Below, one piece after another: positions 11,764-23,158 of a DNA stretch of 64,000 nt. Position 1 is the stretch's first letter; each line of letters begins with the position of its first letter. The position numbers and the translations under genes were made by a program. This DNA is from Macrostomum lignano (lineage: Eukaryota). The notes below the pieces were generated by a model, which saw only the letters and a list, made by a program, of their open reading frames with translations, ran no database searches and had not been told where the DNA came from. The stretch is taken from contig NIVC01001557.1 of the NCBI GenBank assembly GCA_002269645.1, forward strand, positions 62,001 to 126,000. The letters run 5' to 3'.

Positions 11764-11847
11764 TCAATAGGCCCCTCGAGGGGCCATCGGGAAGGTCTTG
11801 CGAATGCCGAGGCACTTCTCGCGGTCGATAAACAGCGAGTTGTTCTT
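11764..11847 (-). CDS. displaced tektin C-terminal coding segment
   Basis: Translates to [27 protein letters not shown], matching the tektin-3 type C-terminus ([20 protein letters not shown] as recalled for human TEKT3). Codons are GC3-rich. Confidence 0.85.
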   Translation of the reverse strand, partial: [27 protein letters not shown]

Positions 11848-11959
11848 CCAGGGCCTATTCGAGACTTGCTTCCCCATTCTGCAGCATTAAGAAGCAAGCA
11901 TCTGCAGATAGATAGATAGATAATGCGAAATGAAACCACGCACACAGTTGAAGCAAATT

Positions 11960-12742
11960 CACAATTTCTTTAATTCTAAGAAAAGAACCGAATTTTCGAC
12001 CTAAACAGGGTCTTCGTCAGGGTATATTGTAAATAAAAACTGTGAAAAAAGGGCAAATTAAAACAGAGTTAAATATTTATAGTGAGTATAGAAAGACGCG
12101 AATAAAATAAAATAATCAATATGGTTGGGCGGGCACGTTGCAACGCGTGTGTACATCTGTACATCTAGTGCTCATCTGAAAAGAGGTTTGAGTTTCGGGC
12201 CTGACCATAGTTACGGCGGGCAGATTGGATGGACATAGAATGTCCTTTAATGAGCGTGAGCGAGTATAGGCAGCCACCGTATCCAGCTCTGCAGCGTGGT
12301 TCGAAATGGCCGTGCGAATTTGATGAACAATTCGCCCAGAGTGGTCCGTGAAAGGGATCACTATTGGGATGCAGGCGTCTTTTTCAGTGATGACGGTGTT
12401 TAAGCCTGCTGGAGTCTGGGTCTGTAGTAAAGCGATGAGCTTCTGCTCCATATTCCTCCGCCTGCGTTGAGCGCCCTCTTTAGTGGTCAGGCACTCAGTA
12501 CTGAGGTACCACAGACCCATAAAGCGGAGGTCCTGAATACTGTGGTTTGGTGACCGAAAGTGCCTGGAGATTGGGGTGTCTTTAGCCAGTCTGATGTCGC
12601 TCAGGTGAGCCTGAAGTCTGACTTTAAGAGCGCCTCCAGTCTCACCTACGTAGATACAGCGGTCATTGCAAGTCTTGCACAGAATGGCATACACCACATT
12701 CCTGGAGTCACAGCGGACTTTTTGACAAATTTTGTAAATCAT
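11960..12742 (-). mobile_element. Penelope-like element remnant: GIY-YIG endonuclease ORF plus 3' region
   Basis: C-x-S-x-NVVY..C..C...YVGET...L..R...H...HF...H...R...E..LI..LQT..PAGLN. The 5' side is replaced by a (GACA)n array. Confidence 0.88.
11987..12024 (-). ncRNA. minimal hammerhead ribozyme-like motif
   Basis: acc CUGACGA A GACC cuguuua GGUC GAAA A UUC ggu: catalytic core boxes, a 4-bp stem II and only about 3 bp of stem I. It sits 3' of the PLE ORF, where hammerheads are known to occur. Confidence 0.6.
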
Positions 12743-12749
12743 TAAATCA

Positions 12750-13665
12750 TCATGTCAGTCTGTTTGTCTGCCTGTCTGCCTGTCTGTCTGTCTGTCTGTC
12801 TGTCTGTCTGTCTGTCTGTCTGTCTGTCTGTCTGTCTGTCTGTCTGTCTGTCTGTCTGTCTGTCTGTCTGTCTGTCTGTCTGTCTGTCTGTCTGTCTGTC
12901 TGTCTGTCTGTCTGTCTGTCAGTCTGTCTGTCTGTCTGTCTGTCTGTCTGTCCGACCTGTCTGTCTATCTTAGTGTCTGTCTGTCTGTCTGTCTGTCTGT
13001 CTGTCTGTCTGTCTGTCTGTCTGTCTGTGTATGCGTCTGTCTGTCTGTCTGTCTGTCTGTCTGTCTGTCTGTCTGTCTTCTGTCTGTCTGTCTGTCCGAC
13101 CTGTCTGTCTATCTTAGTGTCTGTCTGTCTGTCTGTCTGTCTGTCTGTCTGTCTGTCTGTCTGTCTGTCTGTCTGTCTGTCTGTCTGTCTGTGTATGCGT
13201 CTGTCTGTCTGTCTGTCTGTCTGTCTGTCTGTCTGTCTGTCTGTCTGTCTGTCTGTCAGTCTGTTTGTCTGCCTGTCTGCCTGTCTGTCTGTCTGTCTGT
13301 CTGTCTGTCTGTCTGTCTGTCTGTCTGTCTGTCTGTCTGTCTGTCTGTCTGTCTGTCTGTCTGTCTGTCTGTCTGTCTGTCTGTCTGTCTGTCTGTCTTA
13401 GTGTCTGTCTTAGTGTCTGTCTGTCTGTCTGTGTGTGTGTGCCTGTCTGTCTGTCTGTCTGTCTGTCTGTCTGTCTGTCTGTCTGTCTGTCTGTCTGTCT
13501 GTCTGTCTGTCTGTCTGTCTGTCTGTCTGTCTGTCTGTCTGTCTGTCTGTCTGTCTGTCTGTCTGTCTGTCTGTCTGTCTGTCTGTCTGTCTGTCTGTCT
13601 GTCTGTCTGTCTGTCTGTCTGTCTGTCTGTCTGTCTGTCTGTCTGTCTGTCTGTGTGTCTGTCTG
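12750..13665. repeat. (GTCT)n microsatellite
   Basis: Direct reading of the sequence, with CTTAGT and CCGACCT interruptions. Confidence 0.97.
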
Positions 13666-14214
13666 TTTATTTTTCGATTCTGTATTACAATCCTATTTGT
13701 ATACCCGTCTGTCTTCTTGCAATCCGTCTAACTGATATTTCTATAAGCAGCGGAATGTGCAGCACAGTGGGTCATAAATCAGAAATACGCTGGATAAGAA
13801 CAGAGAATATCGGAAGCAGATTGGGGAACACAGTGCCGAATGGCTATCAAATAGCGATTTTAAATCTCGTTCCGATGCCGCACGGGGCCCTGCAGCTCAT
13901 TTAATTGCAGCAGCCGTCCGCTTTTCTCCATCGGAGAGAAGCCGGCATGGAGGTGCTGATGCAGGGCTTCCTGGTGCAGATGGCAGCTGTTGCCAAATAA
14001 CTGCGCCGTCTCGATCGTGTGGAGCGCAGAAGCGCAGATCTAAGCGTGGATAAAAGCCCGCAGAAGGGTTTCCCTCGCCGCAAGAGTTACCGAAATCCAG
14101 CAAAGTTTGTTTGACTAAGATTTGAACTGTAAGATGCTGATATAAATTTCCAGAAGGTTAATTTGATTATGTATCGGTGTATGTAGGTAGACACAGTGAC
14201 AGGAAGTTTGATAA

Positions 14215-14885
14215 AGTCGAAGCCAGAGAGGTAGATTCAGAACCACAGAGGTAGATTCAGAGCCGGAGAAGTAGATTCAGAATCAGAGAGGTAGATTCAG
14301 AGCCGGAGTAGTAGATTCAGAATCAGAGAGGTAGATTCAGAGCCGGAGAAGTAGATTCAGAACCAGAGAGGTAGATTCAGAACCAGAGAGGTAGATTCAG
14401 AATCAGAGAGGTAGATTCAGAGCCGGAGTAGTAGATTCACAGCCAGAGAGGTAGATTCAGAGCCAGCGAGGTAGATTCAAAACCACAGGGAAGTAGATTC
14501 AGAACCAGAGAGGTAGATTCAGAACTAGAGAGGTAGATTCAGAACCGGAAGAAGTAGATTCAGAGCCAGAGAGGTAGATTCAGAACTAGAGAGGTAGATT
14601 CAGAACTAGAGAGGTAGATTCAGAACCAGAGAGGTAGATTCAGAACTAGAGAGGTAGATTCAGAACCAGAGAGGTAGATTCAGAACTAGAGAGGTAGATT
14701 TAGAACTAGAGAGGTAGATTCAGAACCAGAGAGGTAGATTCAGAACTAGAGAGGTAGATTCAGAACTAGAGAGGTAGATTCAGAGCCAGAGAGGTAGATT
14801 TAGAACCAGAGAGGTAGATTCAGAGCCAGAGAAGTAGATTCAGAACTAGAGAGGTAGATTTATAGCCCGTGAGGTAGATTCAAAA
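14215..14885. repeat. 20-bp minisatellite
   Basis: (AGAGGTAGATTCAGAACCAG)n. Confidence 0.93.
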
Positions 14886-21923: not shown

Positions 21924-22067
21924 CCTGAACCGAGCTGCCCAGCACGAGTTGGAGAAGGACACGGCCGACAAATTCTCAGCCCAGCACCTCGATGAGAAGT
22001 GCCACGGCCTGCGCAACACGTCCGGCGGTATCGCATTCCACAACGGAATCGAGCAACTCGACAGAAC
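21924..22067 (+). CDS. TEKT3: tektin-3/5-like, exon 4
   Basis: [33 protein letters not shown]; donor AC|GTAAGT. Confidence 0.93.
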
Positions 22068-22162
22068 GTAAGTACTCTTAGGTTAATAAAAATGGCGCTG
22101 AGAGTATAGCGTATACATTACGCTCGTACTAACTCATCCGGTACCGTTTGCTACCTTGACAG

Positions 22163-22540
22163 GCTGTCTGTCCCGGAGACCTGGGCCAAGTTCAGCAACG
22201 AAAACATCCAGCGCTCGCAGGCTGAACGGGCGGCTAGCAAGAACCTCCGCGCCGAGCTGGACAAGGTGCTCAACGATTGCGCCAACGACATGTGGAAGCA
22301 GTTCAACTGCGTCAACACGGCGCTGAGCGAACGAGTCCAGGAGTGCACCGACGCCAGGAATAAGCTGCAGACTCACCTGGACAAAGTGCTGCAGGAGGTC
22401 TTCGATATGGAAAAGAACATCGAGTTCTTGAAGAAGTCTATCAAGGACAAGGAGGCGCCCTACCAGGTGGCGCAGACTCGCCTGGAGACTCGAATCCACC
22501 GGCCAAACGTTGAGCTCTGTCGCGACCCAGCGCAGCACAG
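22163..22540 (+). CDS. TEKT3: tektin-3/5-like, exon 5
   Basis: SVPETWAKFSNENIQRSQAERAAS...RPNVELCRD (tektin nonapeptide). Donor AG|GTGAGG. Confidence 0.95.
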
Positions 22541-22694
22541 GTGAGGATAGCCTGTTGGAGCCAAGCACACCAAACACTTAAGTTTATGGCAGGCAAATGA
22601 AGTTGACTTTTGAATTCAAGAAAACAAACAAATTATAGTACCCTTTGGTCTCTTTTTTCAGGGGGCTAAAATAAAATACAGCGTCTCAATCCTG

Positions 22695-22930
22695 GCTGAT
22701 CGGCCAATCAGAACTCTAGGAATGAGGTGGCTGTCGGCCAATCAGATCTCTAGGAGTGAGGTGGCCGTCGGCCAATCAGATCTCTAGGAGTGAGGTGGCT
22801 GTCGGCCAATCAGATCTCTAGGAGTGAGGTGGCTGTCGGCTAATCAGATCTCTAGGAGTGAGGTGGCTGTCGGCTAATCAGATCTCTAGGAGTGAGGTGG
22901 CTGTCGGCTAATCAGATCTCTAGGAGTGAG
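22695..22930. repeat. 34-bp CCAAT minisatellite, tektin intron 5
   Basis: GGCCAATCAGATCTCTAGGAGTGAGGTGGCTGTC about x7. Confidence 0.9.
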
Positions 22931-22980
22931 TTTACAATGAAGGAATGTCATACTCGTACTTTACCTCTATCTTCTTCCAG

Positions 22981-23158
22981 GCTGGTTTCTGAGGTTCAGG
23001 AAATTCGCGAAACCGTGGAGCAGCTGCAGGCAAAGCTTCGGGAAGCTGAGAACGCCCTGCAACACCTGCTGAAGACGAAGTCGGCCCTGGAACAACAAGA
23101 ACTTTTGAAAGGCCTTTTGCTGGTGACCAGTTTTGGCTCACCCGAGTGTTTTAATTAA
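22981..23158 (+). CDS. TEKT3: tektin-3/5-like, exon 6; tektin similarity stops at about 23092, followed by a non-tektin tail
   Basis: LVSEVQEIRETVEQLQAKLREAENALQHLLKTKSALE then QQELLKGLLLVTSFGSPECFN*. The expected ...KxNSLxIDxEKC end is absent here. Confidence 0.85.

Follow-up and report, generated by a model that had tools for sequence, protein, structure and literature searches.

Some chromosomal inversions in Drosophila reportedly arise by staggered breaks or by end joining and carry inverted duplications at their breakpoints, for example in the work of Ranz et al. from 2007. Gene conversion between the inverted and the standard arrangement is known from Drosophila inversion heterozygotes. 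Both processes are considered here for a tektin-3-like cilia gene of Macrostomum lignano (line DV1), which is located in a stretch of 64,000 nucleotides of contig NIVC01001557.1 (assembly GCA_002269645.1, Mlig_3_7). This whole stretch is called the window, and adding 62,000 to a window coordinate gives the coordinate on the contig. In the window the last coding exon of the gene is divided between two distant places on opposite strands, and the arrangement probably results from a real 11.2-kb chromosomal inversion in one of three homeologous copies of the gene.

The DV1 genome is described, in the sections of PMC10733133 that treat its structure, as three homeologous subgenomes (S, L1 and L2), which differ by insertions and deletions (indels) and possibly by inversions. 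Two tektin motifs are given in the motif description of PMC6357514: the nonapeptide RPNVELCRD, located between helices 2A and 2B, and LExDxxxKxxxxxIDxx(x)C, located at the end of helix 2B. The inversion discussed here is unmentioned in the matching text of PMC5730564, PMC10733133 and PMC6357514.

The divided tektin gene

The tektin-3-like gene of the window (19191-23158, plus strand) comprises six coding exons, located by tblastn with the M. lignano tektin P0001 at 19191-19463, 19712-20143, 20841-20912, 21922-22068, about 22180-22541 and 22979-23158 (tblastn match to 23092). Its product is the truncated 489-amino-acid protein P0121 (PAA66450.1), whose locus (L003, on NIVC01001557.1) is 100% identical to window positions 9191-33158. 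P0001 is the closest database match of a query built from the plus-strand open reading frames (ORFs), and its 90% cluster comprises five proteins, including P0121 and P0122. The plus-strand exons, which are homologous to tektin as far as 23092, are 96-100% identical to P0001 in tblastn.

Tektin similarity stops after KSALE (23092), and the frame continues through QQELLKGLLLVTSFGSPECFN to a stop codon at 23156-23158. The missing end lies on the minus strand, where residues 474-500 of the P0001 query map to 11847-11767 (E = 1.8e-12), or to 11764 with the stop codon included; no further tektin exon was found on the minus strand of the window by tblastn with P0001. The last coding exon is present in two parts. 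Its proximal part up to the final base homologous to the paralogs, exon 6a (22979-23094, plus strand), is delimited by alignments with two intact M. lignano loci (L001 and L002) and with a transcript of a related Macrostomum species. Its orphaned end with the stop codon, exon 6b (11764-11848, minus strand), is delimited by the same tblastn match and by the correspondence of L002 from 13849 onward to the window from 11848 downward. In the related-species transcript (L004) the last coding exon pairs with L002 as one block (13720-13929), and this block is divided in the window between 22978-23094 and 11848-11768, with 12 transcript bases left unpaired. The preliminary description of this DNA, made from the letters alone, had already reported the loss of similarity at KSALE (about 23092), the unrelated tail of 21 amino acids and the missing end at 11847-11764 of the minus strand, with no other tektin exons there; tblastn and the comparison with the paralogs bear out these points.

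The intact paralogous protein P0122 (PAA65963.1, 500 amino acids) equals P0121 over residues 1-468, and of these two only P0121 ends in QQELLKGLLLVTSFGSPECFN. Compared with the intact protein, P0121 has lost the final 32 residues and gained 21 unrelated ones. The Pfam Tektin model (PF03148) is covered by P0122 over all positions (1-383 of 383) and by P0121 over positions 1-360 of 383 (E = 2e-134), so that the window protein does not contain a full-length Tektin domain, the final 23 model positions being absent. The nonapeptide RPNVELCRD is present and is encoded by exon 5 (ORF 22266-22544). The motif LExDxxxKxxxxxIDxx(x)C is incomplete: ALE is retained, divergence follows, HDLSV is lost, and the remainder is found on the minus strand from 11847 down. 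At 11776-11774, exon 6b of the window has GCC (GAY-type end), the paralogs TCC. No AATAAA or ATTAAA occurs in the 1.9 kb 3' of the new stop codon; AATAAA signals of the native tektin 3' flank are located at 11046 and 10823. The window gene is probably a disabled copy, which would amount to a functional loss.

The gene belongs to the tektin-3/5 class. Its top named database matches are tektin-3-like proteins, and among solved structures the bit scores are 511 for Tektin-3, 432 for Tektin-5, 301 for Tektin-4, 294 for Tektin-1 and 163 for Tektin-2.

Two introns of the gene contain tandem arrays (20996-21874 and 22693-22930). The repeat units of intron 3 measure 66 to 213 nt, and the intron is longest in the window (1032 nt), followed by L002 (964 nt) and L001 (462 nt). 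Intron 5, of equal length in the window and L002, contains seven copies of a 34-nt unit. Weak inverted matches connect part of the orphaned exon end (11795-11825) with plus-strand tektin exons at 20082-20103 and 21994-22019. They reflect no rearrangement; helices 1B and 2B both end in a tektin motif (...EKC/REK...) that is repeated within the protein.

Collinearity with the intact loci

The intact tektin loci used for comparison are L001 (NIVC01000160.1, encoding P0001) and L002 (NIVC01001601.1, encoding P0122). The contig of L002 also contains the carbonic anhydrase locus L007 (P0125), and a further locus, L008, is located on NIVC01001351.1. The genes of NIVC01001601.1 follow one another on a single strand in the order carbonic anhydrase, tektin, C2CD5-like gene, with P0125 located about 24 kb upstream of tektin on the tektin strand. 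A C2CD5-like gene is present 3' of tektin on the same strand in both L001 and L002.

In the window an internal segment of 11.2 kb (11849-23094), comprising the upstream region and tektin exons 1 to 6a, is collinear with L001, L002 and L007, and both flanks are collinear in the opposite orientation. Window 14221-23094 corresponds to L002 4983-13836 in plus orientation, and window 11848-2705 corresponds to L002 13849-23933 in minus orientation (exon end, 3' flank and C2CD5-like gene). The same pattern, internal segment plus and left flank minus, is shown by L001. In the left flank (2705-11763, minus strand) the C2CD5-like gene thus follows the native 3' flank of tektin, as it normally does. The right flank (23109-36452) is the far-upstream region, reversed with respect to tektin; window 36452-23109 matches L007 1-15135 in minus orientation with 96-98.5% identity, counting only single-nucleotide polymorphisms (SNPs). 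Homology to the tektin upstream region is shown by the first 62 nt of the inverted segment (11861-11922), which have a short AGAT repeat at their end; they correspond to L002 1203-1264 and L001 1013-1075 (blastn, 97%, plus/plus).

The layout of the window is thus a reversed downstream region with exon 6b, followed by the upstream region with exons 1 to 6a and by a reversed far-upstream region. Collinearity supports this arrangement as the product of inverting 11849-23094. The preliminary description had suggested a single inversion (about 11.85-23.09 kb) accompanied by an inverted duplication at the breakpoints, and exactly such a geometry is given by the comparison with NIVC01001601.1. Since an intact tektin is found in the other copies, in the related Macrostomum species and also in distant animals, the window represents the derived state. 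On either side of the exon breakpoint the window diverges from L001 by a few percent, which fits a single rearranged copy. The inverted segment forms a haplotype of its own, with about 30 private SNPs at 14.9-17.7 kb and a private Penelope-like insertion near the left junction.

The right flank contains a 28-nt minisatellite (23163-23481), a reverse-transcriptase fragment (at about 24 kb) and the carbonic anhydrase gene (27133-28167, minus strand). The minisatellite and the reverse-transcriptase fragment predate the event, because they are also collinear in the un-inverted L007; the earlier view of the minisatellite and an RTE element as features of the right junction does not hold for this reason. 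The carbonic anhydrase gene is a single exon encoding a secreted-type protein of 344 amino acids, 99% identical to P0125.

Locus L008 was considered as a third copy of the upstream region and rejected as a 99.9% duplicate of L007. L008 1-16429 and L007 11-16382 are 99.9% identical (SNPs only), their differences are nearly all small indels, and L008, a contig of 31.6 kb, looks like a redundant assembly of the L007 locus and not a third subgenome copy. Since L008 duplicates L007, the ancestral state on the upstream side of the distal breakpoint is represented by one copy.

Junctions and the proposed mechanism

At the right junction the exon continues to GGAACA (23094), followed by a 14-nt filler, ACAAGAACTTTTGA (23095-23108, plus strand), and by AAGGCCTTTTGC from 23109, which corresponds to L007 15135. 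The filler was delimited in a three-way alignment that includes the L002 exon and, in reverse complement, L007 and L008. It includes AAGAAC, the start of exon 6b, and codes for the beginning of the novel tail; the remainder of the 21-residue tail and its stop codon are provided by 23109-23158. At the left junction, read on the minus strand, GCAAGTCTC (to 11861) is followed by a 12-nt filler, GAATAGGCCCTG (11849-11860), which includes GGCCCTG, as at the end of exon 6a, and then by GAAGAACAACTCG from 11848 (L002 13849).

The loss from the exon is exactly 12 nt, CGACCTGTCAGT, which separate the two breakpoints in the ancestral exon. About 5 codons (xDLAV-like) had earlier been counted as missing; residues HDLSV are indeed affected, and the loss is limited to these 12 nt. 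Because just 12 nt are lost, an in-silico join of 23094 to 11848 keeps the reading frame, contrary to the former statement that a simple rejoin does not restore it.

The preliminary description had also noted a 10-mer in inverted orientation at both junctions. This 10-mer, GGCCCTGGAA, has exactly two occurrences in the window, 11846-11855 (minus strand) and 23083-23092 (plus strand), compared with 0.11 expected by chance. The match widens to 16 nt with one mismatch (15/16; 11840-11855 and 23083-23098, GGCCCTGGAA[G/C]AACAA), and the calculated chance that five of the six following bases agree, given the exact 10-mer, is about 0.005. This 16-nt inverted duplication is explained by the fillers, since each of them carries a few bases that match the other side of the exon break.

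No inverted repeat longer than 16 nt connects the two junctions, other inverted pairs (26 nt or shorter) lie elsewhere, and no transposon is common to both breakpoints. Repeat-mediated recombination was rejected as a cause, since neither long inverted repeats nor a shared transposon are present at the breakpoints. The junctions fit double-strand breaks repaired by end joining, possibly as staggered breaks with fill-in or with templated insertion.

The following course of events is probable. One break would have occurred in the last tektin coding exon, inside the conserved motif LExDxxxKxxxxxIDxxxC, and the other in upstream intergenic DNA rich in tandem repeats. Rejoining of the ends by end joining would have produced fillers of 12-14 nt, part of which was copied from the exon sequence across the break. 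The repair would have cost 12 nt of the exon, with about 11.5 kb absent at the distal break relative to the paralog. The gene now reads from exon 6a into former upstream DNA, and exon 6b remains with its native 3' flank on the other strand. Two intact copies presumably provide the tektin function, and for this reason the event could be an early gene loss among the duplicates left by genome duplication. Directly visible in the sequence are the geometry, the breakpoints, the fillers and the truncation, whereas the presence of the structure in the animal, end joining as the repair pathway and the functional loss of the copy are deduced.

The distal breakpoint involves more than a reversal. About 11.5 kb of NIVC01001601.1 have no counterpart in the window, namely L007 15136-21032, a 4.4-kb stretch and L002 1-1202; the readable parts (all but the 4.4 kb) are mostly tandem arrays, and L007 15136-21032 contains tandem arrays only, with no transposon ORFs. 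In view of this missing sequence, the event would be more than a simple two-break inversion. L001 and L002 share sequence just left of the upstream boundary, so that some loss in the window copy is likely, and array expansion in the paralog may contribute to the difference.

Near the left junction, inside the inverted segment, a 5'-truncated Penelope-like fragment (11923-12752, minus strand) is found only in the window copy. Its ORF (12116-12742) matches the Pfam GIY-YIG model with E = 4.5e-4 and 20.9 bits, under the curated cut-off of 22.6, and its motif VVYAILCKTCNDRCIYVGET agrees with GIY-YIG by eye. No reverse transcriptase domain was found upstream of this ORF, which is directly preceded on the minus strand by a (TGTC)n array (12753-13666); this array counts 228 units in the window as against 40. 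The fragment is missing from L001, L002, L007 and L008, and between the short AGAT repeat and the (TGTC)n array that flank it in the window, L001 and L002 have about 2.2 kb of other sequence. Judged by this comparison, the fragment is a private insertion within the inverted segment and not a junction feature. A Penelope element had earlier been placed at the left junction, but between this junction and the ORF lie 62 nt of native upstream sequence and the short AGAT repeat.

Mosaic structure of an intact paralog

Variable sites were compared between the window, L001 and L002 over L002 5680-16461, which corresponds to window 14900-23094 and 11848-9237. At 14.9-17.7 kb L002 agrees with L001 at 30 sites and with the window at one (one other). 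At 18.57-23.06 kb the relation is reversed, L002 agreeing with the window at 106 of 111 sites and with L001 at one (four others). From 11779 downward through the 3' flank L002 agrees with L001 again (126 sites, against one shared with the window and one other), as it does in the C2CD5-like gene at 6666-5255 (117, none and one, respectively). L002 thus consists of three parts, an L001-like upstream part, a window-like tract at 18.57-23.06 kb and an L001-like part from exon 6b on. Within the shared tract the window and L002 are distinguished by five sites and by the number of units in the intron-3 array, which differs by one (about 68 nt).

The right-hand switch of L002 falls in a 119-nt interval that contains the inversion breakpoint, and in this way a second contig can be said to bear an independent mark of it. 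Biologically, the tract is most economically read as gene conversion (or a double exchange) from the inverted into the standard-arrangement homeolog, stopping where homology ends. This reading is tentative and somewhat doubtful; the alternative is a mosaic created by read correction or by the assembler. If the tract is a product of conversion, it would provide base-level evidence of ongoing exchange between subgenomes in a recently polyploid animal, and the inversion would serve as a natural boundary marker and would predate the exchange.

Alternative explanations

Assembly artefact is the rival that survives best, although it is unlikely. According to this explanation, a Canu contig falsely flips 11 kb or chimerically joins subgenome copies, and the tektin exon is intact in the animal. 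Errors and chimeric scaffolds are indeed numerous in Mlig_3_7, the three copies share 95-99.9% identity and abound in tandem repeats, which is hard for an assembler, a redundant haplotig exists (L008, near-identical to L007), and L002 is itself mosaic. However, two false joins would be needed, and these would have to agree in the distal region and to come within 12 nt of each other in the exon. The two junctions lie in unique sequence and carry non-templated or partly templated fillers, and no long inverted repeat is present that could let an assembler flip the segment. The window has no N bases, and hence no scaffold gap; a read with a missed adapter would show up as a palindrome, a sequence running into its reverse complement, and no such pattern is present. 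Private variants occur on both sides of each junction, within one read length. The inverted structure therefore probably exists in the animal.

The reservations about a real inversion come from the data source and from the distal breakpoint. The inverted structure is seen here in an assembled contig. The UniRef100 entry of P0121 has two members, one of which we take, from its accession series, to originate from the earlier assembly ML2. Mlig_3_7 is error-prone, with 36% of its length in chimeric scaffolds, as stated in the assembly comparison of PMC10733133, and according to the assembly description in PMC5730564 it was made with Canu and polished with Pilon from the same PacBio reads as ML2. 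If that origin is right, two different assemblers arrived at one and the same right junction; the occurrence of the same 489-amino-acid protein in both assemblies adds little support because the reads are shared. The exon breakpoint is reciprocal within 12 nt, whereas the distal breakpoint is unclean, with about 11.5 kb of paralog sequence absent. Two protein searches do not change this balance. Exon 6a with the novel tail, compared with a collection of 5.8 billion proteins in which M. lignano seems to be poorly represented, gave three distant tektin fragments, none of them with the tail. Exact look-ups of both junction-spanning ORFs found none and are uninformative, intact M. lignano tektins being present there only on NCBI contigs.

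It is far less probable that the 84-nt fragment at 11.8 kb is all that remains of a separate, older tektin paralog and that the plus-strand gene was cut by an unrelated event. The attraction of such an explanation is the divergence of the left flank, about 5% from both L001 and L002, as compared with about 1% between the gene body and L002. In blastn the identity of the window to L002 is 98% in the gene body and 93.6% in the left flank. The three-way comparison of sites removes this discordance, because it is L002 that switches partner and not the window, and the identity gap would not indicate separate origins of the window parts. An origin of the left flank from another, older paralog was rejected by the same analysis. 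Moreover, the fragment starts 12 nt past the end of the plus-strand exon, so that the breakpoints are 12 nt apart in the ancestral exon. The sequence joined to it is the tektin upstream region, its other flank shows the normal downstream synteny with the C2CD5-like gene, and three copies agree with the three known subgenomes. The paralog-remnant alternative offered in the preliminary description is not supported on these grounds.

The splicing repair proposed in the same place, i.e., trans-splicing of two opposite-strand transcripts into a near-full-length tektin, scarcely deserves consideration: spliced-leader trans-splicing is widespread in M. lignano, on the minus strand exon 6b is preceded by AG dinucleotides behind an (ATCT)n tract rich in pyrimidines, and a direct join of both halves is in frame, but exon 6a ends without a GT donor, the nearest donor-like site (23119/23120), if spliced to the acceptor-like AG that precedes GCCCTGG, would put KNNSLFID out of frame (by-eye reading), the minus-strand fragment has no promoter mark, the junction look-ups, in which M. 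lignano seems to be poorly represented, gave no transcript evidence, and rescue is unnecessary with two intact copies.

Other features of the window

The C2CD5-like gene of the left flank (minus strand) starts at about 6094 with a first-exon ORF at 6094-5750 and continues past the left end of the window. Annotation of the paralog gives a C2 domain and YbjQ-like domains, and the introns of the gene contain repeats with a 30-nt period that translate as DLETRDSMIR.

In the right part of the window (51386-57200, minus strand) ORFs resembling exons of a ClpX-like AAA+ ATPase are present. They include a Walker A sequence GPTGCGKT (ORF 53744-54328) and a zinc-ribbon-like N-terminus (56799-57200), and long minisatellites interrupt them at 51.4-52.9 kb. 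Long tandem arrays at 43150-45106, 48152-48592, 60001-62000 and 62377-63285 produce spurious ORFs of up to 639 amino acids in several frames. In the 2-kb block at 60-62 kb the GC skew is extreme (-0.81).

Significance and comparison with known systems

The feature can be classified as a gene-breaking inversion of an ordinary kind that affects one homeolog in a recent polyploid, and the fate of the gene as ordinary decay of a duplicate, because intact copies remain. The possible conversion tract bounded by the breakpoint is its sole mildly unusual element. The truncated protein is already public as a database record, and the inversion would explain the odd C-terminus of the 489-amino-acid tektin PAA66450.1 in GenBank and UniProt as the product of a broken gene copy and not as an isoform. 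The locus also provides a base-resolved example of the early decay of duplicated genes in the M. lignano subgenomes, in which hidden inversions have been suspected and not described at such a scale, and it is flagged for exchange between subgenome copies or for assembly chimerism. The current understanding of tektins and inversions remains unchanged.

Among described proteins, the closest system is bovine Tektin-3 of the axonemal doublet (PDB 7RRO, chain C0). The intact paralog aligns with it over residues 1-495 (E = 2.7e-152), and the segment lost from the window copy aligns residue by residue, so that it is conserved as far as cattle. Like Tektin-3 and Tektin-5 of doublet microtubules, the intact paralog has both RPNVELCRD and the C-terminal motif, whereas the window copy breaks off after LE of the latter.

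As in the Drosophila inversions formed by staggered breaks or end joining, a flipped segment is found here with the same short inverted sequence at both junctions, without a transposon or long repeat common to the breakpoints and with one breakpoint in a gene. The duplication is, however, 16 nt long with a mismatch and interrupted by fillers, compared with hundreds to thousands of bases in Drosophila, and more than two breaks or a long resection must be assumed for the missing 11.5 kb. With gene conversion in Drosophila inversion heterozygotes the locus shares a tract, here of 4.5-5.4 kb in L002, that is near-identical to the inverted copy and ends at the breakpoint. The partners here would be homeologous subgenome copies, and a mosaic of assembly or read correction is an alternative source of the tract.

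The nearest parallel within the species is fractionation after genome duplication, described in the corresponding sections of PMC10733133 with three copies, SNPs of a few percent and many indels, some of which, as the authors note there, may hide inversions. The window agrees with this picture, one copy of a conserved gene being disabled and the others intact. The difference is one of scale: the account in those sections is genome-wide and without this locus, whereas the lesion described here is resolved to the base.

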